In this document: one piece after another, positions 6,945-47,751 of the stretch | Position numbering within the stretch: the stretch's first letter is position 1 | How the letters are laid out: each line of letters begins with the position of its first letter | Source: Rebecca billardiae RCC1528 | Lineage: Eukaryota > Protista > Haptophyta | NCBI GenBank assembly: GCA_965240325.2 | Contig: OZ251222.1 | Span: 186,001 to 250,000 of the forward strand | Length of the DNA stretch: 64,000 bases | Reading direction: 5' to 3' | The notes under the pieces: model-generated | The model's input: the letters and a program-made list of their open reading frames with translations, nothing else | Told to the model about the DNA's origin: nothing | Databases searched by the model: none | Program-made: the position numbers and the translations under genes

Positions 6945-9369
6945 CACCACGACGATTCCCCCACGGGGACGGCGGTCATTTTCGTGAGAATCTCAAACGA
7001 CTGTCCGTACCCGCATTTAAAAGGCACCAGCCTGAACCCTAAACAACCCGATTGTTAAAGAGGCGGCTCCTTTGGTAGGATACAACTCCAGCGGCTTGAA
7101 CAAGCCGCCTTTCAATCTGCCTGCCCAGTTCTCGATCGGCCGCGCCCCGGGGGCCCCCGGCCCGGGCGGCGGAAGGAGGCTCGGGGAGGGAGGGGAGGAT
7201 CAGGGCGGGAGCTGCCTCAACGTCAGGCGGCGGTTGGAGAGAAGGCGGCGGGGCGAGCGGCGCGGCGCAGGGCAGGCGCACACACCGCCCACACCGCCCG
7301 CATGGCGGGCGCGCGCGGGGCCGGTGGCACGGCTGCAGCGCGCGCGCACCGCAGGCCTTGATGTGCCCGAGCACACACACACTCGACGTCGCGCACGGTG
7401 CTGCAGCCGACCGACACCCAGCTCTGCGGATGTCTGACCCACGGCATCACGTACTGCACGAACACGTCGCGGCCCGTTAGCAACGCCTCGCGGAAGCCAT
7501 CGTACCGTGTGCCCTGCGACTTGTAGAACTGGACGTTGTGCGGCAGGCCGATCGTCGCCATCACCTGCGCGCGTGCTGGGCCGGACGGCGCGACAGCGCG
7601 GGCGGTGGCGCGCGCGGGGGCGAGGCCAAGTCAGCAGGCATAAATATACAACTCCGGGCGCGGCGCGCGAGCCCCGCTGCCCCGAGCAAGGCGCGGGGGC
7701 GCAGCGCGCGCCGCGCGCGGCACGCCCACGCAGCATCGGCGTGACACGCTTGGCGTGCGTCGAATCCAAGCGTTGCTGCGGGCTGCCGCGCTCGCAGTTT
7801 AATCAGTACATCACCACGTTGCCATCGTTGCCATCTAGCACAGCGCGAAGCTGCACCGCCCGCCGGCGGAGGCTGTGCCCACCCTCGTCGCGCGGTACAG
7901 CAAGATCCTGTGGTCCGTCCAACCCCAGTGACCCGTCCCCCACATCCGCGAGCAGCAGCACGCGGCGATCTTCGGGAGGCTGCTCACGCGCGTCGCAGCG
8001 CACTACCGAGCCGTGGACGCGACCAAGCGGACCGATATCCAGGTCGAGGCCAGCGCGCTCGACGTCACTGCCATCGGCCTCGTTGCTGAGGACCGCCAGT
8101 GTGTTGGCTGCGCGAGCTCGAGCTCCTATCTCATGTGCCGCTTGCCGCTCTGCGGCGCCGGCTGAGACTTCTTCGCGATCGCGTCTCTCACGGCGATCAA
8201 GCAAGGGCACGTGCTCGGCAGCTGGCGAGAGCAACACAGCGTCCGCGAGGTCAGCTGGGTTCTAGCTGCCAACGGCTTGCGCCCGCGCAACACCTGACCG
8301 CAACGAGCGTCTGCCGGCACGCCGGTGTGGACGCTCGACTTCCAGCACCATTTCAGATGCCATCAAGTCTAGGGAGCAGGCCGTGTGTAGCGAGTGCTAG
8401 AATAAGGCAGACCGCTAGCTGCACTGCGCCCAGCCGCGAGCGCAGTGGTGCCCGTACGCGGCGCTGCGGCACGCACGCGGTGTGCGCGAGCGCTGCGCGG
8501 GCCACCGGCGTGGCCCCGCTGCCCGGGCCGTCCACTCGGCCGCGTGGCGCGCCGCACCCGGCCGTCGCATGGACCCGGCGAGTGCCAGAGCCGGCGAGCA
8601 GTCGTCTACGCTACATCACGGGCCAAGCAGTGGGTAGTCGCGAGCACGATGGACCAAGACGATCTTGCGATGTGGGCGCAGCGACGGCAACCTCACTTGG
8701 CACGCATCGGCGGCCTGAGCCGCCGGAGTGAACAAAGTCACAGACAAGGGGATGCGTGCGCGGATGCGTGCGTTGGGCTCGGTGCATTCGCGCGTACATT
8801 CTGACACCCACGCCAGCTTCCTCTTCTCCTCCGGCGCACACTGCTTGGGCAGCGCGGGCGCCGTGTGGCGCGAGCACCACGAGCTCACAGTCTGGCTGAC
8901 TCGCGCGGCGTCGTGCCGTCTGCACGCACATGTGGCGCACACTACCTCGGGCGGTTCGAGCAATCCATGCGCGCACGCGAATACGCCATGGACGCCGCGT
9001 CTCTCCCCCGCCCGTTCGGCCCCCGCGCGGCCCTGACTCGACTCGCACCCGTCCGCCGAGACCCAGCCCACTGCCCGCCGACTACCGAGGCTTTGGCAGC
9101 GGCTCTCGCGCCGGGGCGCCCTTTGCCGGGACGCTCCTTGTGGAACGCGAAGGTCGAGGGGTAGGTGAATAGGGCGGGCGGAGGTGATTCGAGGAATTGA
9201 AGGAACGACTTCATCAAGTGCCACTAATGATTTGCACCCGCGCGAAATACGTACTTACATTACTCCGACGGTACCGCGAGTAGCTTTGTGAAATAGAGAT
9301 CGGGACGGAAACCGCCGATTCGAACTTCTCCAAAATGTCCGCCCCTCCCACCCGGGAATCGTCGTGGTG
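6945..9369. mobile_element. 2425-bp TIR element inserted into a satellite unit at CC|GG with no TSD
   Basis: Termini CACCACGACGATTCCC and GGGAATCGTCGTGGTG, with the imperfect IR extending ~70 bp. Removing it exactly restores the unit sequence CGAGTCC|GGGGCGCG. Confidence 0.85.
7839..8297 (+). pseudogene. Decayed reading frame inside the 6945-9369 element
   Basis: One frame reads as protein-like sequence with GC3-rich codons (PTLVARYSKILWSV*...IREQQHAAIFGRLLTRVAAHY...*DFFAIASL), interrupted by in-frame TGA at 7929 and 8163. Confidence 0.35.
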
Positions 9370-10762
9370 GGGGCGCGAGTCCGGGCGGGGGCGCACGATG
9401 GCGGCGCGCCGCCATCGTGGCGCCAGCCCGCGCCCGCCGCCATCGCCGCCCGCGCCGCCGCACTCGCCGGTCCGGCTGCCGCCGGGCAGTCCGGGGCCCG
9501 GCGGCCGCGGCGCCGGCGCCAGAGGGGGCGGGGGCGGCGGGGCCGGGACGAGGGACGAGGGACGAGGGACGAGGGACGGCCGCCCGAGTCCGGGGCGCGA
9601 GTCCGGGCGGGGGCGCACGATGGCGGCGCGCCGCCATCGTGGCGCCAGCCCGCGCCCGCCGCCATCGCCGCCCGCCGCCGCACTCGCCGGTCCGGCTGCC
9701 GCCGGGCAGTCCGGGGCCCGCCGGCGGCCGCGGCGCCGGCGCCAGAGGGGGCGGGGGCGGCGGGGCCGGGACGAGGGACGAGGGACGAGGGACGAGGGAC
9801 GGCCGCCCGAGTCCGGGGCGCGAGTCCGGGCGGGGGCGCACGATGGCGGCGCGCCGCCATCGTGGCGCCAGCCCGCGCCCGCCGCCATCGCCGCCCGCCG
9901 CCGCACTCGCCGGTCCGGCTGCCGCCGGGCAGTCCGGGGCCCGGCAGCCGCGGCGCCGGCGCCAGAGGGGGCGGGGGCGGCGGGGCCGGGACGAGGGACG
10001 AGGGACGAGGGACGAGGGACGGCCGCCCGAGTCCGGGGCGCGAGTCCGGGCGGGGGCGCACGATGGCGGCGCGCCGCCATCGTGGCGCCGCAGCCCGCGC
10101 CCGCCGCCATCGCCGCCCGCCGCCGCACTCGCCGGTCCGGCTGCCGCCGGGCAGTCCGGGGCCCGGCGGCCGCGGCGCCGGCGCCAGAGGGGGCGGGGGC
10201 GGCGGGGCCGGGACGAGGGACGAGGGACGAGGGACGAGGGACGGCCGCCCGAGTCCGGGGCGCGAGTCCGGGCGGGGGCGCACGATGGCGGCGCGCCGCC
10301 ATCGTGGCGCCAGCCCGCGCCCGCCGCCATCGCCGCCCGCCGCCGCACTCGCCGGTCCGGCTGCCGCCGGGCAGTCCGGGGCCCGGCGGCCGCGGCGCCG
10401 GCGCCAGAGGGGGCGGGGGCGGCGGGGCCGGGACGAGGGACGAGGGACGAGGGACGAGGGACGGCCGCCCGAGTCCGGGGCGCGAGTCCGGGCGGGGGCG
10501 CACGATGGCGGCGCGCCGCCATCGTGGCGCCAGCCCGCGCCCGCCGCCATCGCCGCCCGCCGCCGCACTCGCCGGTCCGGCGGCCGCCGGGCAGTCCGGG
10601 GCCCGGCGGCCGCGGCGCCGGCGCCAGAGGGGGCGGGGGCGGCGGGGCCGGGACGAGGGACGAGGGACGAGGGACGAGGGACGGCCGCCCGAGTCCGGGG
10701 CGCGAGTCCGGGCGGGGGCGCACGATGGCGGCGCGCCGCCATCGTGGCGCCAGCCCGCGCCC
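9370..10762 (+). repeat. 220-bp GC-rich satellite, right block (~6.3 units)
   Basis: GCCGGTCCGG recurs at 10131, 10351 and 10571 (period 220). Units are near-identical. Confidence 0.95.
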
Positions 10763-10914
10763 GACCGCGCGGGCACGCGCCGGCCGCCCGGCCCCGCGCA
10801 TGGCTCCGCAGCGGGCCTACGGAGACGGTGAAGCCGAGCGCGATGGCGCACGGGAGGCGACGCGGCGCACGGGGCTGCACGCACGCGGCGCCGCGGCGGC
10901 GGGCCGGCCGCGGG

Positions 10915-11923
10915 CCGCGCGCACGGCGCGCGCGGTGGACAAATGGCGGCGGCGGGCGGCGGCGGCGGCAGGGCAGGCGATCATTGCAAGAACCGAATAC
11001 TGTAGCGACCCGTGACGAGCAGCTGCGCCGCGGCCGACTCACCCGTGCCGCCCGTGCGGCGCGGGCGGCACTCGCCGGCGCACGTGGTGGAAGGACAGGC
11101 GCGCGTGGTGGACAAATGGCGGCGGCGGCGGCGGCGGCGGCTCGCGGCGGCGGCGCGTGCGCAGCGACCAGGCGCACGGGGGCCGGGCCACGCGCGCGAG
11201 GCGGCGAGGCGGCCGCGCCGCGCCGCCAAGGCCGCGCTGCGCCGCGGACGCCCGTGCCAGCCGCGCGGCGTCGGGCAGCACTCATCGGGGCGGGCGCGGA
11301 CCGCGCGCGCGGCGCGCGCGGTGGACAAATGGCGGCGGCGGGCGGCGGCGGCGGCTGGGCAGGCGACCATCGCAAGGACCGCACGGCGACCAGTGACGAG
11401 CAGCTACGCTGCGGCCGACTGACCCGTGCCGCCCGCGCGGCGCGGGCGGCACTCATCGGTCGGGGGAGCCGCAGGCGGCGCGCGCGCCGCGTGCGCGCGC
11501 GGTGAAAGGACAGGCGCGCGCGGTGGACAAATGGCGGCGGCGGGCGGCGGCGGCGGCTGGTCAGGCGATCATTGCAAGGACCGAATACTGTAGCGACCCG
11601 TGACGAGCAGCTGCGCCGCGGCCGACTCACCCGTGCCGCCCGTGCGGCGCGGGCGGCACTCGCCGGCGCGCGTGGTGGAAGGACAGGCGCGCGTGGTGGA
11701 CAAATGGCGGCGGCGGCGGCGGCGGCGGCTCCAGGCGGCGGCGCGTGCGCAGCGACCAGGCGCACGGGGGCCGGGCCACGCGCGCGAGGCGGCGAGGCGG
11801 CCGCGCCGCGCCGCCACGGCCGCGCTGCGCCGCGGACGCCCGTGCCAGCCGCGCGGCGTCGGGCAGCACTCATCGGGGCGGGCGCGGACCGCGCGCGCCG
11901 CGCGCACGGTGGACAAATGGCGG
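10915..11923 (+). repeat. 588-bp-offset direct duplication built on a GTGGACAAATGGCGG motif (6 copies)
   Basis: Near-identical text at 10981/11569 and 11012/11600. Motif at ~10935, 11108, 11321, 11523, 11696 and 11909. Confidence 0.85.
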
Positions 11924-14099
11924 TAAGTGTCCGATATAAAATGGCGGATGCGCGCGCGGCATTTGGGGTAGGCACTGGACGGAAGCGCGTCAGCGCGCCC
12001 GTGCGCCGGCCCCGGAGGCATGTTGGCCGCCCGCCTCGTCGCGCAACACTTGACGCGCGGCGTGCGCGGCATGAGCGACCTGGCATCGCCGTCCCTCGCC
12101 GGCTGTCCCTTGTCCCTTGTCCCTCTGTCCCTACCTCGCCGTCCCGGGTCGGGAGTCGGCCGGGCCCCACAGCCAAGGACACCGGACATCGTCTCCCGGA
12201 TTCATTTTCTTTTTCGGCTCTTCTTTTCTTTTCTTTTCTTCCCTTTTCTTTTCTTTTCTTTTATTCTCTGCCAATACGGTTTGGCGCTTTTCGGCCAACT
12301 CAACAGAAGGATGTTCTGTTGAGTTGGCCGATCGGCGAGGGGGGGGGGTGGGCTCGACAACAGGGCCCAGGCTCTGTTGAGTTGAGCTTGGAGGCCAGCT
12401 GGACTCGACAGAAGAATGCTCTGTTGAGTCGGTCGGACGTTGGCGGCCTCTCGACAGAGCCCTGGTCTGTTGAGTTGATCGTTGGTGGACACCGGTGATG
12501 GGGGTGCCTTGGGGCGCACCGACGGCGTAAAGGCGCTGCGGGCGCTGCGGTGCGCGCGACGGCGGCGTTCCCGGTGGCGCTGCTGTTGGAAGCTACTGCG
12601 CCCCTCTCCACCTCGCGCGCTTCGCTCGTCGTCGCCGTCTCCGCACCTGCTACCGGCATGCACGCGTGCGCAGCGCCTCGGACGCCCGTTGACGGCGCGC
12701 GCCCCGGCAACCGCCCATCACCGGCGGCGGCGAGTGCTGTTGCGGTTGGATGGAATCGGATGGTCTGCTGATAGTTGGACCAACCAACCAACGCCCTCGG
12801 TGGGCTTGGGCTTTGGTGTACGGAGCGTTCGGTGGAACTTGAGCCTCGGCACATTTCCCAGCGAAGTGGCCCACCTCGACGTGGCTGGCACGCTCGTCAC
12901 GCGCTCCCGAGCGCTCGTTTCGCGGTGCCGCAGGCCTTGGGCAGACCAGTCAGACATGGCGCGACCGCATTACCGGGCCATGTGCGCACCACATCCGCGC
13001 TACGTGGCCTGCGCTCTGGACGACTGGGAGTCAATGCCCGGACCCACTGCATTCCACTGCCCCGCATGCACCCCGAGTCACCGTCAGAAGGCGTCGACGA
13101 GCGCAGAGCGGGTGCGCGGGAGTTCAACCAACTCGTGTACCTTCTTGCAAGCACCAGTGGCGAGGTCGCACGCCCAATCGTGACCAGCCGTGGAACTTGA
13201 GCCGGTCGGCAGCAAAACCACCGTGTGGCGGCCGAGATGAAGTAGCAGCGTGCAACTGCAAGGAGGAGGCGCGGTGCGTGTCCGCGGCTGGCGAGAGGCG
13301 TCCGGACCGTGATGTTCTCGGCCGCGTCCGCGCGCTTCCCGCCGCCGCAGGCCCCGTGTACGCCCGTCGTCGCCCTCGCCGCGTGGGGCGTGGGCGCCCA
13401 CCGAGCTCAAGTTCCATGGCAAGGAAGTACTGTACTGATCTACAGTTTACTATGATACAGTACGTAGTAAGATTTAACGTGCACACTTGGTTCAACAGTA
13501 CGTAGTGATCTTGACAATGTGGCCGTGCACGCGGCAACAGGGCTCAGGCGGCCCAGTTGTCGAGTGCAGGCGTGTGTGGCTTGCGATGGCAGCCAGCCGT
13601 CAGCCGGGGCGCCACGCCCACGGTTCGCTGGTGGGCTGGCCCGATGGCGTCGCAGAGCTCACGCGTACGGGGGAGGAGGGCATCGACGAGGAGACGACCA
13701 AGGGCGAGAAGCAGCCGGGGGCACGCAGCACGGGGCTCGGAGCATGCCGCCAGCACGCGTGCCTCCACACCGTCGCACGTCACCCTTGCTCGTAGCTGTG
13801 CGCTGTGCTGCACTCATCTCACCATCGCCCATGCTACGGGCGCGGCCGGGTGGTGGACATCTACCTGTCGGCGCAGCACTGGCATCGGTGGTCGCCAGAC
13901 ACTTCTCGACTTGCTCTGCGCGTGACAGCAAGGAGACGGCAGCGCCACAGCTGTGTGAGCAGATGTCAGGTGCTGCTCTGCTCAGTGAGGCTGATAGACT
14001 GAGCACGCATGGCGGGCGCTGGCATTCCCCCGCATCCATGAGCCCAACAGGTGCATAGCCGTGCCCAGGAGCGCAGGACCAACCGCCCGGTGCTGCTTC

Positions 14100-23518: not shown

Positions 23519-24613
23519 TTATGACTGATTGATGCCGCCAGTGTGATCATCCGCCACAGATTCGTCTTCCGAGGTCGTCTCCTCGCCTTCCACTGACCCG
23601 TCTGCGTCGCCCTCGGCCACGCGGGCATCCCCGACGCTTGCGCCTGCAGCAACCTCGCACACATCGAGGACGCACAGGTAGAACGGCCCGAACCCGTCAG
23701 AGCTGTCTGGCAGCACAAACCAGCCGCCGGCGGGCGTTGGCTCGCCGAAGGGGAGGTCAGCGGGCGCGCGTGCGCGCACGCGCTCCGAGTACCGCCGAAG
23801 CACGGCGCGGATCACGCCGTCGTTCTCACGCTCGTCCAGCGCGCACGTGCTGTACACGACTGTCGCCGGGGCGCGTGCCGCTTGGAGTGCACCACACAGC
23901 AGCTTGAGCTGGCGATCTGCATTGGCCTCGGGCGTGCGCACGGTCCAATGCACGAGCTCGGCTGGGTTCTGGAGCAGGTGTCGGTCCGTGGAGCACGGCG
24001 CGTCGACGAGGACTTTGCTGAATCGCCTGGGGAAGCTGGTGAGCACGGTGGCGTCATGCTGGGTCACGCGCACGGCGGCGCTGTGCTCGCGCGGCAGGTA
24101 CTGCGCCAAGACCTTGCGAAGCCGTGCGCATCGGTCAGGCGAGACATCGTTGCACTGCAGCTGCCCACCTGCGTGCGGCTGCAGCCGCTGAAGCGCGGCG
24201 ATGGCCTTGCCGCCCGGTGCCGCGCACACGTCGAGCACAACGTCCGTGGGTCCAACCCTCAGCGCCTCGACAGCGAGCAGCGACGCGCCGTCGAGGAGGT
24301 AGTGCTCAAGCAAGCCCGAGCCATCACCGCGCGGCGGCGGGAAGCTAGTACCAGGCGTACAGCGGTAGCAGCTCAACGCGAGAGGCAGCGGCTCGCCTGC
24401 TGTGAGCGCCGAATCCTCCTCAAGCTCTGTGTGCTCGCAGAACCGATTGACGAGGCGCACGTGCGCCGGCGGAGCGAGGAGCGCCGCGCGGAGCTGCTGC
24501 CATCGTTCGGGACCAAATTGGCGGGCAAAGTGGGCGTCATATTCGGCGGCGACTACCGGCAGCGGGCGCTGTTTGGGCGCCTTGGCGGCCTGCGAGCGAG
24601 ACGGGCGTGGCAT
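23519..24613 (-). CDS. NOL1/NOP2/Sun-family RNA m5C methyltransferase, NSUN3/NSUN4-like
   Basis: Motifs YLLDGASLLAVEAL, VLDVCAAPGGKA, KVLVDAPCS, VYSTCAL..END.VI and FGPFY. First ATG at 24613. Confidence 0.9.
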   Translation of the reverse strand: MPRPSRSQAAKAPKQRPLPVVAAEYDAHFARQFGPERWQQLRAALLAPPAHVRLVNRFCEHTELEEDSALTAGEPLPLALSCYRCTPGTSFPPPRGDGSGLLEHYLLDGASLLAVEALRVGPTDVVLDVCAAPGGKAIAALQRLQPHAGGQLQCNDVSPDRCARLRKVLAQYLPREHSAAVRVTQHDATVLTSFPRRFSKVLVDAPCSTDRHLLQNPAELVHWTVRTPEANADRQLKLLCGALQAARAPATVVYSTCALDERENDGVIRAVLRRYSERVRARAPADLPFGEPTPAGGWFVLPDSSDGFGPFYLCVLDVCEVAAGASVGDARVAEGDADGSVEGEETTSEDESVADDHTGGINQS

Positions 24614-24701
24614 CACTCGGGAGCGGCTGGCGGTCCTCACTCGAGCGCGCGCGCTGGTCAGAAAGCGTGGCGGGAGTCGTCAGACCTCCCCTGAATCGAG
24701 T

Positions 24702-32228: not shown

Positions 32229-33171
32229 CTAACAGGCTAACTCGGGTAAGCAGTAACCGCCGCCCGGACACGGACTGAGTCTGAGCCATGGCTCAGTAAG
32301 CGTCGGATGGGTGGCCATACGTGAAGGCGGCACTCTGCATCTCACGGAGTCCGAGTCCGCGCTCTGCACGCTCGCACCCGAGGGAGGGCGGATGTAGAAG
32401 CTGAATCTGGCGCCGTCGTCCCATGGCAGGCCGCCGCAGCTGCGCCCGGCCGCCGCGACTAGCATGCACGCAATGATCGAGTAGGCGTTCGAGTCGGTCG
32501 TGTGTTTGCTGCGCGTGCTGATCGTGGACTGTACGCGCACGCCGCGCTCACGTCGGCGGCGACGACGACGATCTCGGTGCGGAGCGTGAGCGACGGCATG
32601 CACTCGAGAGTTGGATGATGGCGTCGACCGCGATTGGCCGACTGCCTTCGGCAGCATGGCATGGGCCAGCAGAAGCATCACCCACTCTTGGCACTTAGCT
32701 TGCGCGAGGCAAGACCCGGGAGCGAATCGACGCGAAACGGCGAGCCGCTCCGTCACTGATCGTGGAGGCCGCGTGCTGTGTGCGCGCCCGCAGTAAGGCG
32801 AGCTGCCGCTGTGGATCAGACGCTAGAAAGCAGGCCGTCATCGCAAACGGCGCGCTCATGAGCAGCCGCTGGTGGAACGGGATCGGGCGCATCGACAACA
32901 GCCGCTGCCGCCACCCTTCAGCCGTCCGGAAGGAGTTGTAGTCGGGCCCCGTTGTCCGCGGCACGATGCACAGGCCCACAGTCAATCCCAGCAGCGTCGA
33001 GGCCTGCGCCCTCAGATCCGCATCGTGGCGGACATCGCCGAGCACCTTCAGAGGTGATTCACGCAGCTTGGCGAGGGTAGCCCGGGGATGCGCGTAAGGC
33101 CGGTAGCCCTCCGTGTGCTCCGCCCCCGCCGGCACGAACGAGACGCACGCAAGCGCGACGAGCACCAGCAT
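32229..33171 (-). CDS. Hypothetical secreted protein; two overlapping frames need an unresolved intron or frameshift near 32760-32790
   Basis: Signal peptide MLVLVALACVSFVPAGA at ATG 33171. Protein-like sequence continues in ORF 32229-32756, but no clean splice pair was identified. Confidence 0.4.
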
Positions 33172-33572: not shown

Positions 33573-35081
33573 ATGACGACGCATGGGCCCGCGGCCGGGC
33601 AGCCGGCGTCGAGCACTATCTTCGTGGCTGACCTACCAGCCGGCGTCCAGGAGTCTGACCTGTCGCTCACCTTTGGCAACCTCGTCGGCTACGCGTCCTC
33701 GCGGCTGCGAGTTGACCGGCAGAACCGCGTCGTGGGCTTTGTTGAGTTCCACTCGCCGGCCGATGCATCCGCGGCCATGCAGCAGATGGACGGGCGCCCC
33801 GTGCAAGGCGGGCAGCAGCCCATGAAGATGCAGTTCGCCAAGGCCCAGCGGACTGGCCCCACCCAGGGGGCGCCGCCGGCCAAGCGCGCGCGCGACGACG
33901 ACGTGGGGCCAGGCATGCGGCCGCCGCCCAGTGCGCGGGGAGGCAGCTACATGGACACCGGGTACGACGCGGAGCCCGTCCCTTCGCGTGGGAGCCTCGG
34001 CTCGACGGCGAGGGGCGCGTTCGCCGACCACCTGCCGCAGCCACCTCAGTATCCCCAAGAGACGATGTCTCCTGGTGCCGCGCCCGGCCTGGGCGGCGGC
34101 ATGATGGGCGGCGCGCCGATGCCGCTGCACCCCGCACGCGCCCACATGGTGGGCGGGCCGGCGGACATGCTGGGGGCCAACCTGCCTCCGGACGCGAGCC
34201 CGACGCTGTACGTCGACAACGTGCCCCTCGACGCGACTGTGCGCGAGCTCTCGCACATCTTCCGCCCATTCCCCGGGTACCACTCGGTGCGCATCATTCA
34301 CAAGGAGCCCAAGCGACCCGGCGACCCGAAGCGCGTCCTCTGCTTCGTCGAGTTCAGCAACAAGTTCCACGCGACGGCCGCCCGCAACACCACGCAGGGC
34401 TACCGGATGGACGTGGGCGACGCGCGCGGCCTCGGCGTCGAGTTCGCAAAGGTCAGGGGATCTGACGGAGGCGCAGCCGCGCCTGGTAGCGGCCAGCGTG
34501 CGCAGCCGCCGCTGCCGCCACTGCCGCCGAACGATGCGCACGACAGCTTGCGCGCCGTTGACCGTGGCAACGGTGGCAGCCGCCGGGACGACCGATACCG
34601 GCGCCACCACAGCCCAGACAGCCGGTCGTGGAGCGGCAGCGAGTCGCGCGATCGCGGCGATCGCGATCGCGATCGTGGCCGCGACCGTGACCGTGACCGT
34701 GACCGCCGGCGCGCCGACCGCCGCCGACGCGACGACCGAGACGACGAGCGCGGCAGCTTCGACGAGGGCCGCCGCTCGAGCGGCGATCGGAGACGGCGAG
34801 AGTGGGGCAACCGCACCGACTACGCCGATGAAGAGGAGGCGGATCGCGATCGCCGCCAGCGAGCTTCGCCGGGCGAGGTCGAGCCCGAGCTGCGCCGCCG
34901 TGACAGCCACGACGGTGATGTCCCGATGGACGGCGAGGGTTTGGGCCCGGGAGACCTCCCCACCGCAGACGAGGGCGAGGTGCTTCCTGGAGCGCTGCCG
35001 TTCCGCCTGGACGAGGACCAGGAGACGACGCCGGCGCTTGGCGGCGGCAGTGGTGACGCTGCTGCCTCCGAGTGGGACTGA
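33573..35081 (+). CDS. Two-RRM RNA-binding protein with an RD/RS-rich tail; RRM2 resembles plant nuclear speckle RNA-binding proteins (NSR)
   Basis: RRM1 TIFVADLP...VGFVEF; RRM2 LPPDASPTLYVDNVP...RELSHIFRPFPGY...LCFVEF...QGYRMD; DRDRDR tract. Confidence 0.88.
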   Translation: MTTHGPAAGQPASSTIFVADLPAGVQESDLSLTFGNLVGYASSRLRVDRQNRVVGFVEFHSPADASAAMQQMDGRPVQGGQQPMKMQFAKAQRTGPTQGAPPAKRARDDDVGPGMRPPPSARGGSYMDTGYDAEPVPSRGSLGSTARGAFADHLPQPPQYPQETMSPGAAPGLGGGMMGGAPMPLHPARAHMVGGPADMLGANLPPDASPTLYVDNVPLDATVRELSHIFRPFPGYHSVRIIHKEPKRPGDPKRVLCFVEFSNKFHATAARNTTQGYRMDVGDARGLGVEFAKVRGSDGGAAAPGSGQRAQPPLPPLPPNDAHDSLRAVDRGNGGSRRDDRYRRHHSPDSRSWSGSESRDRGDRDRDRGRDRDRDRDRRRADRRRRDDRDDERGSFDEGRRSSGDRRRREWGNRTDYADEEEADRDRRQRASPGEVEPELRRRDSHDGDVPMDGEGLGPGDLPTADEGEVLPGALPFRLDEDQETTPALGGGSGDAAASEWD

Positions 35082-39920: not shown

Positions 39921-41856
39921 AGCCTGGTCCAAACGCACTGGAGCACTTTCGGGGATTTTATCGCCAAATGAACGCGGGCCCCTAGGCACGCGCTCACACC
40001 CGGAAACAGCGTAACAAATGGGCCCAGCCCGGGCGCAGCAAAAGTTTCGGCCTAAAAATCGCATCCGTGGCCCGTCGTGAGCGTGCGCGCGCGCGCCGCG
40101 GACAACTACGGACACATAGAGAATCGTCAGTCCGAATGTGGGTAAGTACTTAGCCGAAATGAGCCCAAACGCACGAACTTACTTATTGGCGTACGTCGAG
40201 GCGAGCATGAACCCTGGTACAGGCCATTAGGATGGGCTGTGGTCTGTGCGCAAGTGGCCGTACTCAACTACTGCAAGATCGACTATATTACCCATTTATA
40301 CCCGCATATTATGGGAAATGTACCCGCATAAGTATGAGTTCTGGACCTGTATAATTAAAATGCCACTATGTCGTTACATATTCGCCATAGGTGGGTAGCT
40401 GTCCCAGGCTGCACGATTAGTGCGGCGCTCGGGGTGCAGTGGTCGGACGAGGCTCCGCCTGGCCTTCCGCGCACTCCTGCAGACAAGAAGAGGGCCGGAC
40501 TCCCACCCGGCCAGGCGTGCGGCAGTCGGTCAGGTGCTGGACCTGGTCTGGAGACCATCTCCTGCGTGGCGACTGGCCGATCTGCGGCACAACGCGCGCC
40601 GCCGTGAGCCACACGGCAGGTTCGCAACGGATCCGGATCGCGTGTCCATGGCGGCGTGCATCGAGTCATTCAAGCTGTCAAGTCGCGTGCCACGCCCGCC
40701 CTTTCACTTGGGGCATCCGTACTGCCTACAACGACGACATGTGCGTCCTTAGACGAGGCATAATCGCGGTTCTAGCTGCTCGTCCAAGGGTCAGATCGCA
40801 CGTCCTTGCTCGCCCGACAGCCTCAACGGCGGACTGATGTGATCCGCGGGTGACGATGCGACCGCTTCGAGTGCGCCTACGGCCACCACCGGGGTGGGGA
40901 TCGTTCATGGGCACCCTCCGCGTGCCATGACATGCTCTGGCCGTGCGTGGTGACTTGACCCACCGCACGTAAACGGGGAAGACACCCGAGCACGTGCTTC
41001 CGAGCCACCCGAATGGCACAATGTGCCACCCATGGACACCAAACACGTGCCAAAGCGCGAGCCTTGCGTGCTGGAGTAGCCGCGCGACACCAAGGAAGAC
41101 GTATGAGCGCTCTCAACCATCTTCAAGCGACGACTCCGTCGACTCTGCCTCGCAGACCGCGGTACGATCCTCGACCTTGTGCTCGCAGCAAAGGCCATGA
41201 CGGTAAAGCAGCACCCAGGCGATGGGAGTCAGCCGGCAGCCACTACACTGCGACTGTACACACCCCGCCCCGCAAGGCGAGCCATCCTGCTCGCCACCAG
41301 CCCGTCATACAGCTCCACGAGGAGCACAAATCGACAGCCGCCGCTCAGGACGGCCCATGCGCAAACGTGACGGGACTGGCCGGATGAAGCGTTGGCGATG
41401 CGCAGCGCGCCCAACGCTGGTGGTGGCATCGAGTACATGCTAGGGGTAGGCGGTGGCCCACACGAGCCGTCGCGTGGCCCGCATATTACCCGAGGTGGCC
41501 CGTCTCGAAGGCGCCGCGCAACCCAGCAGGTGAGCGTTCGACGCGCGCCGTCAGGCGAGAAGTCGACCTGGCGACGGACCGCGGGCGGCGGAAGCAACGC
41601 AGACATGTCGCTCAAGGTGTGCACGCACACCACCGGGGCACCCGAACGATGTGTCCAGCACTACACCTGACATGAGGCGGCGCAGTCGTCCAGTCGAGGC
41701 TCTCGAGCCCCTTCCCGACCTTCGTCGCGGCGAGCCGTCGGACGGCCGGTGGCGATTTTTGACGAGCGCGACGAGCGACGAGAAAAATCGGGAGAAATCA
41801 GGCGCCCAAAATCCGAAAAGGCTTTTGCACTGGCGAAAATCGGGATGGACCAGGCT
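39921..41856. mobile_element. ~1.94-kb non-autonomous TIR element
   Basis: TIR (T)AGCCTGGTCCA / TGGACCAGGCT(A). Flanking direct repeat ACTCACACT at 39912-39920 and 41857-41865 (9-bp TSD, or 7-bp CTCACAC if the termini are TAG..CTA). Confidence 0.85.
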
Positions 41857-41924
41857 ACTCACACTGTCGGACTGACGTGTAACGACGACGCCGCAGCCTA
41901 TATTACTGCTACTACTAATAAGTA

Positions 41925-44900
41925 CTAGCGGCACAACACCTTGGTGCGCACGTCGTCCGGGATCGACGAGTGAATCGACGACGGCGGCGGTCCTGCGTAA
42001 TCGACGGCGCCTGTGTCGTCCGCCACCCACATTGCCAGCCCGCGCACCAACTGCTTGAGCGCGGTGTCCGCGCCTTTCCAGTGCTTCGCGCAGAATGCTA
42101 CGAGCAGCTTGGATGCATCCATCCCCTCGTCAGCCTCGGGCAGATTTCGGCTCTGTGCCCAGAGCGCGTCCACCTCGGCCCAGGCGTCGGTGAGGCCGAG
42201 CGACTTGAGCGCCCACGCGAGCAGGCCGAGCAGCGCGCATGAGCGCTGTGGCAGGTCCAGCCGCACCATCATCGGGTCCATCGGCGACGAGAGCACGAGC
42301 GTGACGAGCTCGCACAGCAGCGGCTGCATCGGGCCGAGCTCGGCGATGGGCAAGGGGCCATCGGGCACGGGTCGCCGCGTGCTGGCCAGGCGGCTCGCCG
42401 TCTCCTGGCACTGCCGCACGAGCGAGTTGATGTCCTTCTGCGCGACCGGCTTGGTCAGGCACGACGTCATGCCCACGTCGAGGCACTTCTGGTGCTCCGC
42501 GTGCAGCGCGTTGGCGGTGAGGGCGAGCACGGGCAGCTCGGCGGCCCACGGCGTGACGTTGGACTGCATCAGCCGGAGGATGCGCGACGCCTGCCGCCCG
42601 TCGAGCACGGGCATGTTCAGGTCCATCAGCACGAGGTCGAGGTACCGCCCCGCCGCGAGCTCGTGGTGCGCGAGCACGATCGCCTCGAGCCCGTTGTGCG
42701 CCTCGAGCACGACGTTGCCCTTGAGGAACATCGAGACGACGATGCGGTTCATGTCGTCGTCCTCCACGAGCAGCACGCGCAGCGGGCGCGGCTCGTTTGC
42801 GCCCGGGCTGCTCGGCGGCTCGGCGGCGGAGGCCGCGGCCGCGGCGGCCTCGGAGGCCTGCGAGATGGCGGTGCACGCGGCCTGCGCGCCGCATGACAGC
42901 GCTGCGGGCTTGGCGGTCGGGCCGCGGCCGCAGAGCCGGTTGTACAGCGGCGGCGTCTGTGGCTGCGCGTCCTCGAAGGTCTGCGCGCGCGCGGGTGCCG
43001 CACGCGCATGCGCCGGGTCACGGCGGCGAGGTCAAAGGGCTGAGCTCGCGGCGGCGAAGGCGCGCAGAGGCCGTGCGGCGGGCCGCCCGCCCCCGCCCCC
43101 ACGCACGCGCGCGCGCGCGCGAAGAGGAGAGAGCAAGGGAGAGAGCGAGAGAGAGAGGGCGAGACGCCGTGCGGTGCCAAGGGCGGGCGTTCCAAGGGCG
43201 CTCGCGCGCGCGCGCTCGCGCGCGCGGCCTCGCCCGCGCGCGCACCAGCATGTCCAGCTCGAACGTGAAGGCCGTGCCCACGCCGGGCCGGGAGTCGACG
43301 GTGAGCGTGCCGCCCATCGCGTCGACCAGCTCCTTGCACACCGTCAGCCCGATCCCCGTCGCCGTCGTCATCCCGACCGACATGGTGTTGACCGCCTCGC
43401 CCGGCACCGTGCCAAACAGTTGGAACACGTGCTCGAGCGCGCTCTTCGGGATCCCCACGCCCGTGTCGCGCACGCACATGGAGAGCGTGCGTGGCACGCA
43501 GCGGCTGCGCCGGCGCGGGGGCAGGGGCGAGCGCGGCGGGCGCGGCTCAGCGCGAGCGCGGCGCTGGGCCCGCCGCGCGCGCCGAGCGGCCGCGCGGCGG
43601 CGCGGGGGAAGGCGCGCGACGCGGCCGCGCGGCCGCGCGCGCGCGCACCGGGGTGCGTAGAGGCGCGCGCGCTCGTCCAGCGCGGGGTAGCCAGGATCCG
43701 ATGGATCGATCAGCCAGGTGCGGACGTTGATCGTGACGGAGCCGTGCTTCGTGTACTTGATGCCGTTGCTCACCAAGTTGGTCAGGATCTGCTGGATGCG
43801 CTGCCCGTCGCCCAGCACCGTCTTGGGCACGTTCTCGGAGATGTCGACGGTGAAGGAGACGTTCTGCTTGCGCTCATTGCCGTCGAGCAGCACGCGCCGG
43901 CAGTGCGACGCGACGATCGCGATCGTGTCGCGCACGGCAAACTCGGCCTCGGAGAGGACAAACTGGCCGTGCTGCACCTTCGACATGTCCAGCACGTCGC
44001 ACACGAGCATGAAGAGGTGCTCCGCCGACCTGCGCCGCGCGCCGCCGCAGCCGGGGCGACGGAGGGGGCGCGCGTGCGGAGCCGAGGCGCGGTCAGCAGT
44101 CGCTCACCGCGCTCAGCCCGCGCTCGGCTCGCGGCCGGCGCGCTCGCGCGCGGCGCGCGGCGCGCGGCGCGCTGCGGCGGCGGCCCGCCGCACCGCTCGT
44201 GCCCCGTGCATCCCGCGCGGCACCGGGCGCCGCGCCGCGTCGCGCGCACCTCAGCGCGTGCTCCAGCTGCGTCGAGAGCTCCTCGCGCGAGTACTGCGTG
44301 CCCGACTGCGCGGTCGCCAGCTGCAGCATGCCGATGAGCGCGGACAGCGGCGTGCGCATCTCGTGGCTCATGATCGCGAGGAACTTGTCCTTTGAGTCGT
44401 TGAGCGCCTCGACGTGCGCTCGGCTCGCCTCGGCGAGGAGGAAGTCGCACTCGGCGGTCATGTCCGCGCCGAGGCAGATCAGCCCGGTCACCAGGCCCGC
44501 GCCGTCGCGCGTGACCGAGGCTGTGATCAGCAGCAGCGTCGCCTTGCACGACGCCGCGCCCGCCGACGACGGCGGCGCGTGGTCGGTGCTCGACGCGACG
44601 GTGCCCTCGTCCGCCTCGTTCGGGTCGAGCTCGAACTCGAGCTGGAACGTGACCGAGCTACTGTCCGCGCGCGCCTGCCCCGCGCCTGCCGGCGCGTCGT
44701 CGAGCGAGACCAGCACCGTGCGCAGCGCCGTGTACGCCTCGCGCCGCGACTTGTCGGTCAGCTTGGGCAGATCCCAGACCTGCCGGCCCTCGGCGACCGC
44801 GGGCTCGATGTGCGAGAGCGCGGCGCACCGCCGGTTCCACACGGTCACGGTGGCGGAGGCGTCGGTGACGATGATCGGCACGCCCGACACCGCGATCATC

Positions 44901-45916
44901 GCGCGCAGGTCGTCCTGCATCATCCGCCGCTCCGCCTGCACCGTGTGGAACTGGCGGTGCAGCGCCTCCGACGCGTGCTTCACCTGCGCCTGCACGATCG
45001 ACATGGTGACAAAGGCCTTGGCGATCACGTCGCTCACCGAGTAGAGCACGAGCTCGGCGTGCGAGTCGATGAAGCCCAGCTCGGCCGCCAGCCAGATCAC
45101 GGGGAACACGTGCCACCCGACCACGACGAACGCGCCCAGCAGCACGACGTTGCGGTCCACCGAGTTCTTGTCCGCCGCGCGGAGCGCGGCGATCAGGCCG
45201 CGCGAGAGGTGGGTGAGGCAGAACTGCGAGATGGCGAGGAGCACGAGGGATGCGACGATCGGGAGGGGCAGCGTGCCGTACAGCCCCAGCTGTATGCACA
45301 TGTACGTCTGGAAGATGCGCCAGCAGTTGCGCTGCGGCGTGTCGTCCGCGAGGGTGTTGAGCAGCGTCGTCATCATCGGCATCGTGTGGTCCCAGACGAG
45401 GAAGCGCAGGAGGAGCATGCGCCGGCCCATGAAGTCGTAGACGTAGGGAGACGGCGCCACCAGCCGCGACGCGTAGGACAGAAGGCACACGAGTACGAGG
45501 CTCGTGCTCAGCCGCACCGAGCTGTTGAGGACGACGCTCGGCCACAGCGCAATCAGCACGAGGTTGACGAGCAGCAGGGTGGACATGGCCACGATCACGT
45601 GCACCACGACGTGCAGCTCGGCGTCGGCGAGCGCGTCGTAGTGGAACGCCGTCGCCGTGCCCGCGGGCGCGTACGCCTCCCCGTAGAGCACGGCGAGCGC
45701 GAGCACGTGCGACACACACACGCTCGCCGGGTGCGTGACGCGGCGATAGATCGTCGCGGACAAGTCGGTGCGCGAATAGGCGCCGGCGAGAGCGAGCATC
45801 GGGAGCACTCCCATCACGAGAGCGCTCATCCAAAGCCCGCGCACGACGACCAAGACGCCCACGCGCATCTCGTCGCCGCACGCCTCCACTGGAACGCCGC
45901 CTCCGGCGTGCACCAT
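41925..45916 (-). CDS. Histidine-kinase rhodopsin: rhodopsin-PAS-HisKA-HATPase_c-REC, 4 exons (45916-44250, 44029-43649, 43504-43246, 42980-41925), ~1120 aa
   Basis: Rhodopsin motifs LRFLVWDHTMP (TM3), WHVFPVIW (TM6) and DVIAK (TM7). Kinase motifs SHEMRTPL, NLVSNGIKYT, DTGVGI and TGIGL. Receiver motifs VEDD, LMDLNMP, LTANA and TKP. Three GT-AG introns join in frame (3363 nt). Confidence 0.93.
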
Positions 45917-46392
45917 GACGTGAGGAGGAGGAAGGGTGCCCGCCTCCGGTCGCTCACTTGGCGATTGGCGAAGCGGTGTGAATACTATATGAAATCGTGG
46001 GTGCAAGAAGTAGAAAGTTAAAAAGTGGAGGAGGAGATCTCGTGCTCACGAGATACGGTCCTGGTAAATGTACGAGCGAAACGACGGCAATGATTTAACG
46101 TCATACCAATGTTGATGCGGTTATTTGGTTATCATGAGATAATGTCGCAATACACAAGTAATTAAGGTTCAAGCAAACTCGAGGGATCCGAGTTGCGTCA
46201 AAAAGCTACCGGTTCGCAAACGTGTGCTACTCCTGCTTCATTATTTGAAGTGCCGAAGCGACACGAAATTTCCTCATAATATTATCTCCCGGGTTTTTCC
46301 GACAGAACGCTCCGTTTTCTAAGGCCCGAAAATGCTAAAAGGCCAAAAAATCAATAATAAAGCACGTTCGTGTGCGTCCGCCATTTGCCGGA

Positions 46393-47751
46393 ATGGGCGC
46401 CAACGCGCAGCCGCTGCTCAACCCGCCAGACGCCGCGCCGCGCGACAAGCGGACCACGGTGCTGGCGTGCTTCTTCGCCGTCGGCGCCGGCTCGTGTATC
46501 ACCTTCAACTCGGTCGTGATGGCGGTGGCCTACTTCCGCGAGTTCCTCGGCGAGGGCGTGCTCGCCAAGCTCGCGCTCGCGCACAACTCGGCGCTGCTGC
46601 TCTCCATGGGCAGTCTGATCGTCGCCGCCTCAAAGAACCCGTCTCTCGCCGTGTATCAGATCGTACTGCGCGGCTCGCTGCTCTTCGCCGTCGGCTTCGA
46701 TGCCGTCGTGCTGCAGGCCGCGTGGCGACGTCAGCCGATCCACGAGGCGCCGTTGCTGGTCGCCGTCGCGCTCAACGGCGTGGCGACGGGGCTTGTGCAG
46801 GGTCTCGGCGCGTCGCTCGGCGGGCTGTTCGACCCGTACTCGTTCTACAAGGGCTGCGGCGCCATGCAGCTCAGCGGCGCAGCGTTCGGCGTGCTCGTCC
46901 CCACGCTCACGCAGCTCGCTCTCATCCCGATCGCCGCGCGCGCGCGCACGAGCGAGGAGCTCAAGGACGCGTCACGGCTCGGCGCGGTCGTGAGCTGCGC
47001 GATCGCGGCGGCGGTGGGCCTCTCGGCGACCGTCGCCGTGGGCGTGCTCAAGTCCACGCAGATCTGGCACGCCGTCGCCGAGCAGTGTCTCGCCGGGATC
47101 GAGAACGAGTGCGGCCCGCGGCCGCCGGCCGGCTCGGAGGCGCGCATCAACCCCGCGGTGGACACGATCGGCAAGTGCATCAACACGGGCTCGAAGCGCG
47201 TGCTCTGGACGCGGCTGCACCAGATGTCGATGGTCATGGTCGCGCAGATGATCATCGAGTTCTCCTTCGTCGCGCTCCTGCTGATGGCCCCCGCCCTGCC
47301 CGTGCGCGGCGGCTCGTTCTGGCAGCACTTCCTCGCGACCGCCTGCTTGATTGTCGCCAACGTCGGCAGCTTCGCCGGGCGCATGACCGCGACCACGAGC
47401 GGGCTTGGCGAGCCTTCGGGGCTGGCGCGCTTCGGGAGGCATGGCCGGACGGTCCTGCTGAGCGCGCTCGTGGGATTCGCGCCCATCCCCGCCGTCGCGA
47501 TCCACGTGTACAAGCACGCCGCGCTGAGCGGGGGCGGGGCGCTCTCGGCGTGGTGGCTGCTCGCGTGCTTCGCGCTCGCGTCGACGGTCATCGGCTTCAC
47601 GCTCATCTCGCTCATGCAGCTCTCGCAGAGGCTGTGCAACCATAGCATGGCGACGCCGTGCGAGATCACGGCGCAGTTCATCTGGATCTCGCTCAACGTT
47701 GGCGCCCTCGGGGGAACCGTCCTCGCGCTCGCCATGGCGCATGGCCACTGA
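46393..47751 (+). CDS. Multi-pass membrane transporter, equilibrative nucleoside transporter (SLC29/ENT)-like
   Basis: About 11 hydrophobic segments with a central loop; FFAVGAGSCITFNSV..AVAYF, ANVGSFAGR and LNVGALGG resemble ENT motifs. First ATG at 46393. Confidence 0.65.
   Translation: MGANAQPLLNPPDAAPRDKRTTVLACFFAVGAGSCITFNSVVMAVAYFREFLGEGVLAKLALAHNSALLLSMGSLIVAASKNPSLAVYQIVLRGSLLFAVGFDAVVLQAAWRRQPIHEAPLLVAVALNGVATGLVQGLGASLGGLFDPYSFYKGCGAMQLSGAAFGVLVPTLTQLALIPIAARARTSEELKDASRLGAVVSCAIAAAVGLSATVAVGVLKSTQIWHAVAEQCLAGIENECGPRPPAGSEARINPAVDTIGKCINTGSKRVLWTRLHQMSMVMVAQMIIEFSFVALLLMAPALPVRGGSFWQHFLATACLIVANVGSFAGRMTATTSGLGEPSGLARFGRHGRTVLLSALVGFAPIPAVAIHVYKHAALSGGGALSAWWLLACFALASTVIGFTLISLMQLSQRLCNHSMATPCEITAQFIWISLNVGALGGTVLALAMAHGH

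Follow-up and report, generated by a model that had tools for sequence, protein, structure and literature searches.

A predicted rhodopsin-PAS-histidine kinase-receiver gene of a pavlovophyte haptophyte, a side branch of the known histidine kinase rhodopsins

Do the open reading frame fragments found on the minus strand between positions 41925 and 45916 of a 64,000-nucleotide stretch of DNA (the window) form one gene for a light-sensing hybrid histidine kinase, and, if so, is the encoded protein of a new kind? The original prediction held that three GT-AG introns join the fragments into a single 1120-aa frame. The frame, the splice sites and the alignment of relatives agree with this predicted gene model, the parts of which are listed below.

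45916-45914, minus strand: ATG start codon of exon 1
44250..45916, minus strand: exon 1, aa 1-555 plus 2 nt; rhodopsin, PAS and the first half of DHp/HisKA
44030..44249, minus strand: intron 1, 220 nt, GTGCGCGC..CGGCGCAG, 87% GC, within HisKA
43649..44029, minus strand: exon 2, second half of DHp and the N-terminal part of HATPase_c, including the N box
43505..43648, minus strand: intron 2, 144 nt, 92% GC, in frame and stop-free, in the ATP-lid region of HATPase_c
43246..43504, minus strand: exon 3, the rest of HATPase_c (G1, F and G2 boxes)
42981..43245, minus strand: intron 3, 265 nt, 80% GC, phase 0, at the boundary of the kinase and the receiver linker
41925..42980, minus strand: exon 4, linker, receiver and C-terminal helical domain; stop codon TAG at 41927-41925

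Joining of the four minus-strand exons (45916-44250, 44029-43649, 43504-43246 and 42980-41925) yields 3363 nt, i.e. 1120 codons and a single terminal stop. An in-frame stop lies upstream of the ATG (46048-46046), in a 5' flank of 48% GC. Each intron has GT..AG borders, beginning with GTGCGCGC and ending with GCGCAG; GC-rich ends and low-complexity sequence are all that the three introns share (mean column identity of 62% in a gappy alignment). The DNA is 70% GC, so that long ORFs are cheap and the length of an ORF by itself says little. The exons have a GC3 of 0.93-0.96 (0.96 in exon 1) against a GC2 of 0.37-0.51, while the GC content of the introns is flat (0.75-0.96 at all three positions); codon periodicity is thus confined to the exons. 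Two full-length relatives, a D. lutheri protein of 1133 aa (P0151) and the 1060-aa P0154, align without gaps through all three junctions, and the junction at intron 1 (..EHALR|SAEHLF..) matches the conserved LRSAEHL of both. Intron 2 is spanned by the HATPase_c profile, positions 1-41 of which fall in exon 2 and positions 37-109 in exon 3.

The D. lutheri protein (KAG8466379.1; KFE25_002135), recorded as a hypothetical protein / histidine kinase and so far uncharacterised, has the same domain order as the window protein and is its positional orthologue. The two loci share the order HVA22, unknown gene, RRM gene and HKR (histidine kinase rhodopsin), although in D. lutheri the HKR gene lies in the opposite orientation with respect to the genes around it. 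The proteins are about 40% identical over Rh-PAS-HisKA, compared with 60% for a neighbouring gene. The D. lutheri gene displays the same intron style (GTGCGCGC..GCGCAG) but contains only two introns, the counterpart of intron 1 being absent. The position and phase of the other two are identical in both genes: intron 2 lies at YAPR|ACVP there and YAPR|RCVP here, and intron 3 at LATL|GFYD there and LDML|TFED here. The splicing of the four exons is therefore predicted from gap-free relatives, two shared intron positions and phases, and exon-limited periodicity. Public sequencing runs were looked for, as RNA over 41700-46200 and as any kind over exon 1, and none was listed.

The locus is also overlapped by ORFs of 250-770 aa on the other strand and in other frames; none of them had a Pfam match, and they were taken as chance ORFs driven by GC content. 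No Rfam family was found across 40-48 kb, and no second copy of the rhodopsin-kinase gene within the window. The protein itself was absent from a collection of 15 billion proteins (exhaustive search of representatives), in which the best match had 40% identity, and it was not retrieved there with the D. lutheri protein or with a stop-free frame of 650 aa, confined to exon 1 so as to admit full-length candidates, as the query. The neighbouring gene and the closest homologues indicate a host of the Pavlovophyceae (Haptophyta), so the earlier description of the host as a probably non-green alga was right.

The sensor part of the protein is encoded entirely by exon 1.

45674..45877, minus strand: two predicted membrane helices, aa 14-46 and 63-81, before the canonical seven (AF2, pLDDT 58-97)
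44981..45627, minus strand: seven-helix microbial rhodopsin core, helices A-G, aa 98-312 (Pfam, Foldseek)
45395..45397, minus strand: Val174 at the counter-ion position D85 of bacteriorhodopsin, in helix C RFLVWDHTMP (HMMER alignments to RYIDW)
45017..45019, minus strand: retinal Schiff-base Lys300 (SDVIAK), DVIAK aligning with DxxxK of solved rhodopsins

A scan of the exon pieces detected Bac_rhodopsin of Pfam at aa 131-303 (E 3e-11, 43.6 bits). The predicted fold is close to those of bacteriorhodopsins in the PDB (Foldseek; TM by target of about 0.8, rmsd 2.5-3 A), and the enzyme rhodopsin Rh-PDE (7d7q) was among the top matches. In sequence the domain is very divergent (best E-value against the PDB, 3.5e-5). 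Compared with solved rhodopsins, helices C and G retain R171, W175, T178, W268, P272, W275, D296 and K300; of these, D296, which occupies the position of D212 in bacteriorhodopsin (BR), and K300 are almost invariant in an alignment of 21 sequences. The D85 position carries Val throughout the clade of the window protein, including D. lutheri KAG8466379.1, which also has the DVxxK motif, and M, E or Q in representatives of the green-algal HKRs. A non-carboxylate at this position together with the His of W-x-H-T in helix C is common to the window protein and green-algal HKR representatives, as seen in those of C. eustigma and Mesostigma. Since BR D85 is replaced by Val and D96 by Leu, D296 and R171 are the only charged partners left, which suggests that the domain is a sensor and not a pump. 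With the primary counter-ion missing, the Schiff base need not be protonated and absorb in the visible. We infer that the protein binds retinal and that its activity depends on light.

Nine transmembrane helices are predicted in total (AF2), the first of them with a pLDDT of 58-79. Lys and Arg number three in loop 47-62 and are missing from the N-tail and from loop 82-97, a distribution that fits a predicted topology with the N-terminus outside and the C-terminus inside. In the alignment, the second of the two additional helices corresponds to the one in a Mesostigma HKR. The reading of the N-terminal hydrophobic stretch as a cleavable signal peptide (LALAGA|Y) was provisionally set aside in favour of the nine-helix reading; its orientation would clash with the next helix being an extra helix of type Ib.

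The rhodopsin core is followed by the modules of a hybrid kinase.

44462..44980, minus strand: cytosolic extension of helix G, aa 313-345, and PAS, aa 346-485 (AF2; Pfam PAS marginal)
44363..44365, minus strand: phospho-accepting His518 in the H box SHEMRTPL (Pfam, motif)
42417..42776, minus strand: receiver domain, aa 838-957 (Response_reg E 2e-16; DD 843-844, D889, T924, K946)

In the AF2 model (mean pLDDT 82) the rhodopsin fold runs through helix G, as a single helix (285-343), into the beta-sheet of the PAS, and then into DHp. The Pfam scan detected Bac_rhodopsin, PAS, HisKA, HATPase_c and Response_reg, the PAS being marginal (23.2 bits at a cut-off of 22.6). Exon 1 closes with a match to positions 2-31 of the HisKA profile, and all the kinase boxes are intact (N, aa 640-649; G1, 696-702; F, 710-715; G2, 733-738). 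The phospho-acceptor of the receiver is D889 (42621-42623), and this domain aligns with receivers of the hybrid kinases Chaetomium HK3, Sln1, GacS and CKI1 (VIA-align Z 20). K300, H518, the N, G1, F and G2 boxes and D889 all lie exactly where the original prediction had placed them.

The PAS lies directly upstream of the kinase and, in profile comparisons, is specifically similar to PAS-A of phytochromes. When a profile of the clade alone was compared with the PDB, all 11 matches were to plant phytochromes (A, B or C) and fell within residues of about 615-740 (E 1.8e-7 to 1.8e-3); the similarity is to the first PAS of their output module, with the preceding helix and the last strands. A wider PAS profile matched phytochromes with an E-value of 1e-20 and reached PAS2 and the H-box region. 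As a single sequence the window PAS had no PDB match, so the link to phytochromes rests on profiles. The sensors of the two photoreceptors differ, being a bilin-carrying PAS-GAF-PHY core in phytochromes and a retinal membrane domain here. Moreover, the output module of phytochromes contains two PAS domains, whereas the window protein has one, joined to a kinase with all catalytic residues.

Beyond the receiver, the protein ends in a helical region.

42015..42347, minus strand: C-terminal helical bundle, aa 981-1091, with no assigned role (AF2, five helices, pLDDT of about 80-92)

The bundle is conserved in P0151 and P0154. No Pfam match was obtained for the C-terminal 171 aa, even at E 10, and no Pfam Hpt in the exons or in these 171 aa. 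A fused HPt domain, with the phospho-His motif HxxKG as in unorthodox hybrid kinases of the ArcB/BvgS/RpfC type, had been considered because of the motif KHWKG (H1069), and this reading was dropped since the His is not kept in P0151 or P0154, Pfam was blank and hhalign of the C-terminal alignment against 11 HPt domains gave a probability of 0.3%. Matches to REC-HPt proteins in AFDB cover both domains, with TM <0.5; the fold searches of the C-terminus were dominated by the receiver domain. A protein-atlas feature search on the C-terminus returned only sub-threshold matches. The bundle may be a degenerate HPt-like tail that serves as output; neither an HPt domain nor a partner was found. Guanylate_cyc was absent from every exon, while the same scan detected the cyclase in green-algal representatives, which bears out the earlier statement that the protein has no cyclase.

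How does this architecture compare with known HKRs? HKR1/COP5 and 2c-Cyclop (COP6) of Chlamydomonas and the 2c-Cyclop of Volvox are enzyme rhodopsins that likewise carry HisKA-HATPase_c-REC and one or more extra N-terminal helices. In contrast to the window protein, they have (i) eight transmembrane helices, not the nine predicted here, (ii) a guanylyl cyclase, often with SAM, after the receiver, and (iii) no PAS between the opsin and the kinase. Their eight-helix "type Ib" topology, shown for Cop5 and the 2c-Cyclops, places the N-terminus in the cytosol, whereas the loop charges here fit an outside N-terminus. In canonical HKR representatives HisKA follows the rhodopsin domain after about 30-40 aa, with no PAS. 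In 2c-Cyclop, light has been shown to control a His-to-Asp transfer that requires ATP (PMC6284317).

The absence of a cyclase, which had been put forward as a novelty, is already known. HisK-RR rhodopsins of Ostreococcus, Micromonas, Guillardia and others have been tabulated outside the cyclase row (PMC7693036), and according to a review the cyclase is present in only some HKRs (PMC12558739). The Rhod-HK of Ostreococcus tauri (Ot-HKR, a "noncanonical HKR") consists of a rhodopsin, a histidine kinase and a receiver and is cyclase-less, as here (PMC7693036, PMC13739731). It has been treated as a hybrid kinase (PMC4343026), which in the published model feeds an HPt protein and a response regulator (PMC4343026, PMC7693036, PMC13739731). 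Its host is a green (prasinophyte) alga, and it was compared here by its published description; in P0133, a representative of cyclase-less Rh-HK-REC, the scan found no PAS. Nor are HKRs confined to green algae: putative ones are reported in the cryptophyte Guillardia theta (PMC7714340).

The order Rh-PAS-HK-REC itself is also represented, unnamed, in public collections: by D. lutheri KAG8466379.1 (the precomputed Pfam domains of which record no PAS) and by the dinoflagellate or environmental-protist proteins P0136 (Ansanella granifera), P0038, P0019, P0130 and P0028. Dinoflagellate transcripts are among these entries. The dinoflagellate and environmental-protist proteins resemble the window protein over a stretch that starts at helix F/G, takes in the PAS and reaches HisKA, but they differ from it in the residue at D85 (E or Q) and in much higher Pfam scores for the PAS, and their rhodopsins form a distinct, well-supported clade. 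In a maximum likelihood tree of 19 rhodopsins, built without a pump outgroup and with an unresolved backbone, the window opsin falls in a separate pavlovophyte clade of five members (support 100/99) and not within the clade of the green-algal HKRs (97/94). The claim of a new enzyme-rhodopsin architecture thus stands in part: we found no paper on a PAS-bridged or a haptophyte HKR, and the PAS insertion is on that ground a variant, as yet undescribed, of a known family and not a new class, while proteins of this order are already deposited. The gene product is an uncharacterised side branch of the known HKRs and not a wholly new kind of photoreceptor. What looks undescribed is the small pavlovophyte clade, with its nine predicted helices, Val at the D85 position, PAS of the phytochrome output type and C-terminal bundle without a conserved His.

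On this evidence the locus is probably a functional nuclear pavlovophyte gene for a membrane-bound retinal photoreceptor with hybrid histidine kinase activity, a divergent member of the HKR group. Light would be absorbed by the retinal that K300 of helix G binds, and the movement of helices F and G would pass along the unbroken extension of helix G (285-343) to the phytochrome-type PAS (346-485) and from there, through a second long helix (487-519), to the DHp helix with H518. This would make the CA domain phosphorylate H518 faster or slower, and the phosphoryl group would move from H518 to D889 of the fused receiver, which would pass it to a separate HPt/response-regulator pair or control the C-terminal helical bundle. 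We infer the sign of the regulation from the characterised Cr2c-Cyclop1, in which light inhibits kinase-dependent output; the protein would presumably act as a dimer with a downstream partner. To our knowledge, kinase-level data on HKRs are essentially limited to green-algal cyclase fusions, and we know of no reported structure of a rhodopsin-kinase junction.

The opsin-like domain might instead be light-blind, a nine-helix anchor or a sensor of another kind, with a ligand or cofactor of the PAS as the true input of the kinase. Its weak conservation and the loss of the D85 counter-ion would fit this, as would P0136, in which a His is aligned with the retinal Lys position, so that Rh-PAS-HK proteins can evidently lose this Lys. 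However, K300, D296, R171, W175, W268, P272 and W275 are kept throughout the clade. The PAS lacks a LOV-type Cys motif and resembles PAS domains of the phytochrome output module, which lie outside the bilin-binding sensory core. Characterised HKRs, moreover, bind retinal in spite of the absence of a D85 carboxylate (PMC8818676 and our alignment). We consider a light-blind opsin unlikely.

It is distinctly unlikely, too, that the kinase integrates two inputs, with retinal reporting light and the PAS a second signal (a metabolite, the redox state or a partner protein). PAS domains often bind ligands, the low-complexity PAS loop 430-458 (about 30 aa, clade-variable, pLDDT <50) could be a regulatory or docking site, and canonical HKR representatives manage without a PAS; on the other hand, no cofactor motif was recognised in this PAS, and its nearest solved homologues are PAS-A domains of phytochromes, which, as far as we know, do not bind a cofactor. 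We regard it as very improbable that the locus belongs to a multigene family as a silent or decaying paralogue, or that the model is wrong in detail, e.g. with intron 2 retained, its 144 stop-free nucleotides preserving the frame. The lower identity to the syntenic D. lutheri counterpart than that of a neighbouring gene could reflect decay, but every catalytic motif is preserved, the 3.4 kb are free of frameshifts and stops, all exons are strongly codon-periodic and the intron positions are common to the annotated D. lutheri orthologue.

Within the preferred reading, that of a retinal photoreceptor kinase, it is conceivable, if tentative, that the pavlovophyte proteins constitute an enzyme-rhodopsin subfamily in which a nine-helix opsin with a non-carboxylate at D85 was grafted onto a phytochrome-type PAS-kinase-receiver, retinal replacing the bilin sensor. 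Such a subfamily could have a distinct photochemistry, e.g. UV/blue bistable.

HKRs are the least understood enzyme rhodopsins, and the locus adds a compact (1120 aa), cyclase-free one from another algal supergroup. Its opsin-PAS-kinase joint could reveal by what route a retinal switch in the membrane acts on a soluble PAS-DHp module and whether sensors of different photoreceptor classes swap on one output module. The protein is also a possible scaffold for light-controlled phosphorelay in optogenetics, the value of which hinges on retinal binding and light-dependent kinase activity. We know of no phytochromes in haptophytes, which makes these genes candidate players in the light signalling or phototaxis of pavlovophytes.

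The gene on the minus strand at 45916-41925 of the window could be reproduced as four exons which, as the original prediction had proposed, are joined across three introns into one 1120-aa frame. The joined exons comprise 3363 nt, i.e. 1120 codons and a single, terminal stop.

Exons and predicted introns of the histidine-kinase rhodopsin (HKR) gene
45916-44250, minus strand, exon 1
44030-44249, minus strand, predicted intron 1 (220 nt)
44029-43649, minus strand, exon 2
43505-43648, minus strand, predicted intron 2 (144 nt)
43504-43246, minus strand, exon 3
42981-43245, minus strand, predicted intron 3 (265 nt)
42980-41925, minus strand, exon 4

Strong codon periodicity was observed in all four exons (GC3 of 0.93-0.96, GC2 of 0.37-0.51). 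The introns, with a GC content of 80-92% throughout, displayed none, and the GC content of the flanks falls to 48-56%. The restriction of periodicity to the exons carries weight, since the GC-rich DNA of this region yields long ORFs in many frames; no family matches were obtained for the ORFs overlapping the gene in other frames. At the sequence level, the presence of one four-exon gene, joined by predicted splicing, was confirmed.

No public sequencing runs turned up for the locus, and it is comparison with relatives that backs the predicted splicing. An exhaustive search of representatives revealed only four proteins matching below E 1e-30. The cluster of the best match includes Diacronema lutheri KAG8466379.1 (P0151, 1133 aa), and another includes P0154 (1060 aa), which groups together with a Pavlovales sp. 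CCMP2436 fragment. Both full-length proteins aligned with the gene model without a single gap over any of the three junctions (LRSAEHL, YAPRxCVP and L(D/A)xL|xF). Mapping of P0151 to its own genomic locus identified two introns, identical in position and phase to introns 2 and 3, while intron 1 is absent from this orthologue and restricted to the lineage of the window. All three introns of the window gene start with GTGCGCGC and end with GCGCAG. One of the D. lutheri introns has the exact GTGCGCGC..GCGCAG form and the other begins with GTGAGCGC, which looks like a strongly biased, lineage-typical splice-site context. The gene's own product was absent from the protein collections searched (representative and D. 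lutheri-query searches, exon 1 frame).

Introns of the D. lutheri orthologue (locus L001)
8058-8239, intron
8502-8609, intron

A Pfam scan of the four exon translations detected all five of the expected domains.

Pfam domains encoded by the minus-strand gene
Bac_rhodopsin, aa 131-303, E 3e-11
PAS, 23.2 bits (cut-off 22.6)
HisKA, profile positions 2-31, stopping at the exon 1 boundary
HATPase_c, interrupted cleanly by intron 2, with profile positions 1-41 encoded by exon 2 and positions 37-109 by exon 3
Response_reg, E 2e-16

The retinal lysine K300 (45017-45019), the phospho-accepting H518 (44363-44365) and the receiver D889 (42621-42623) lie exactly where they had been placed before, and the N, G1, F and G2 boxes were all found, as were the receiver DD, T and K residues. 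The earlier account of what the gene encodes was right.

The opsin domain was analyzed using an AlphaFold2 model of the protein (21-sequence alignment, mean pLDDT of 82). Nine membrane helices were predicted (aa 14-46, aa 63-81, then A to G), together with a B-C beta-hairpin and a helix G unbroken to residue 343. In a Foldseek search the model resembled type I rhodopsins, bacteriorhodopsins (BR) among them (TM by target of about 0.8, rmsd 2.5-3 A), with the eight-helix enzyme rhodopsin Rh-PDE among the top matches. HMMER aligned RFLVWDHTMP with the R-Y-x-D-W-x-x-T-x-P motif of solved rhodopsins. The equivalents of BR R82, W86, T89 and P91 (helix C), of W182, P186 and W189 (W-H-V-F-P-V-I-W of helix F), and of D212 and K216 (helix G) are preserved, and the D85 and D96 positions are occupied by Val174 and Leu185. 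Asp is also missing from the D85 position of the aligned green-algal HKR representatives (M, E or Q), several of which share the His of W-x-H-T with the window opsin.

The loop charges are consistent with a nine-helix topology of the opsin, N-out. At the end of the first hydrophobic segment (aa 14-46; 45779-45877) stands LALAGA|Y, in which an aromatic residue follows an AXA-like motif and which is conserved in relatives as ALIGAY and MLAGSS. Instead of forming a ninth membrane helix, this segment could act as a signal or targeting sequence. If predicted correctly, the nine-helix N-out opsin would differ from Cop5 and the 2c-Cyclops, which have eight helices and an N-in topology (PMC6284317). 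In the ML tree of opsin domains (19 sequences), the window opsin was basal in a five-member clade (support 100/99) that also holds the D. lutheri and CCMP2436-like proteins. Distinct from this pavlovophyte clade were the clade of green-algal HKRs and a second PAS-bearing clade with a dinoflagellate sequence. The Rh-PAS-HK-REC transcript of the dinoflagellate Ansanella granifera (P0136) has a His (ADATVH) aligned at the retinal Lys position of helix G and, judging from this alignment, may encode a lysine-less opsin kinase.

In the AlphaFold2 model, residues 346-485 adopt a canonical PAS fold that contains a low-complexity, disordered loop (430-458), and a helix (487-519) then leads into the H box. 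A clade-only PAS profile, built from five pavlovophyte-clade sequences, matched 11 PDB sequences, all of them plant phytochromes A, B or C (E from 1.8e-7), and these matches fall on the first PAS of the phytochrome output module. The wider family profile reached E 1e-20 at the same PAS, and a second stretch extended to PAS2 and the H-box region. The link to phytochromes is a profile-level one, since the window PAS sequence alone matched nothing in the PDB. Otherwise, the nearest counterparts of the PAS-kinase part are protist hybrid kinases with multiple PAS domains, several of them equipped with HPt domains.

The receiver is similar to the receivers of hybrid kinases in phosphorelays (Z 20). 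The next 110 aa or so form a predicted helical bundle (pLDDT of about 80-92) that is conserved in both full-length relatives. This bundle is possibly a degenerate HPt-like one. REC-HPt proteins were its matches among AFDB clusters, and the alignments covered both domains, but with TM <0.5. Neither a Pfam match nor profile similarity to HPt domains was found, and the bundle has no conserved His, the KHWKG of the window protein not being common to the relatives.

The suggestion of a non-green host was also right, since an NSUN4-like neighbour and the HKR relatives point to a pavlovophyte haptophyte. The NSUN4-like methyltransferase exon (23522-24640) matched itself in the collections (100%), followed at 57-60% identity by Pavlovales sp. 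CCMP2436 and by D. lutheri KFE25_002142, a gene seven locus tags away from the HKR gene of that species. Three further D. lutheri HKR neighbours were matched at 27.3-34.5 kb.

Microsynteny with D. lutheri JAGTXO010000008.1
27342-27926, HVA22/TB2
32785-33057, unknown ORF
33582-34454, RRM protein

Relative to these three, the HKR gene is inverted. The shared neighbours identify the window gene as the positional orthologue of KFE25_002135, and the window as DNA of a pavlovophyte haptophyte distinct from both CCMP2436 and the D. lutheri strain. A divergently oriented single-exon ORF of 459 aa (46372-47751, plus strand), with many hydrophobic segments and no Pfam match, is the neighbour of the HKR gene on the far side of an intergenic stretch that is richer in AT. 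Elsewhere, a 2-kb stretch (10001-12000, and 9214-12182) of up to 82% GC and strong AT skew is covered by ORFs of 500-975 aa that overlap one another in several frames of both strands.

The proposal of a candidate new enzyme-rhodopsin architecture was overstated, as cyclase-less HKRs have been published and Rh-PAS-HK-REC proteins are already present, unnamed, in public collections. HKRs are an established enzyme-rhodopsin family, only some of which contain a cyclase (PMC12558739). HisK-RR rhodopsins of Ostreococcus, Micromonas, Guillardia and others have been tabulated outside the cyclase row (PMC7693036), Ostreococcus Rhod-HK has been modelled as a hybrid kinase signalling via an HPt protein (PMC4343026), and putative HKRs have been reported from a cryptophyte (PMC7714340). 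A recent survey set canonical and noncanonical HKRs apart and listed 17 uncharacterised rhodopsin clusters (PMC13739731). No description of a PAS-bridged or a haptophyte HKR was found in the openly searchable literature. The window gene is best placed among the HKRs, as a variant distinguished by its pavlovophyte clade, a PAS linker of the phytochrome type, nine predicted helices, the lack of a cyclase and a helical tail without a family. There are good grounds to infer that its product functions in a light-regulated phosphorelay.
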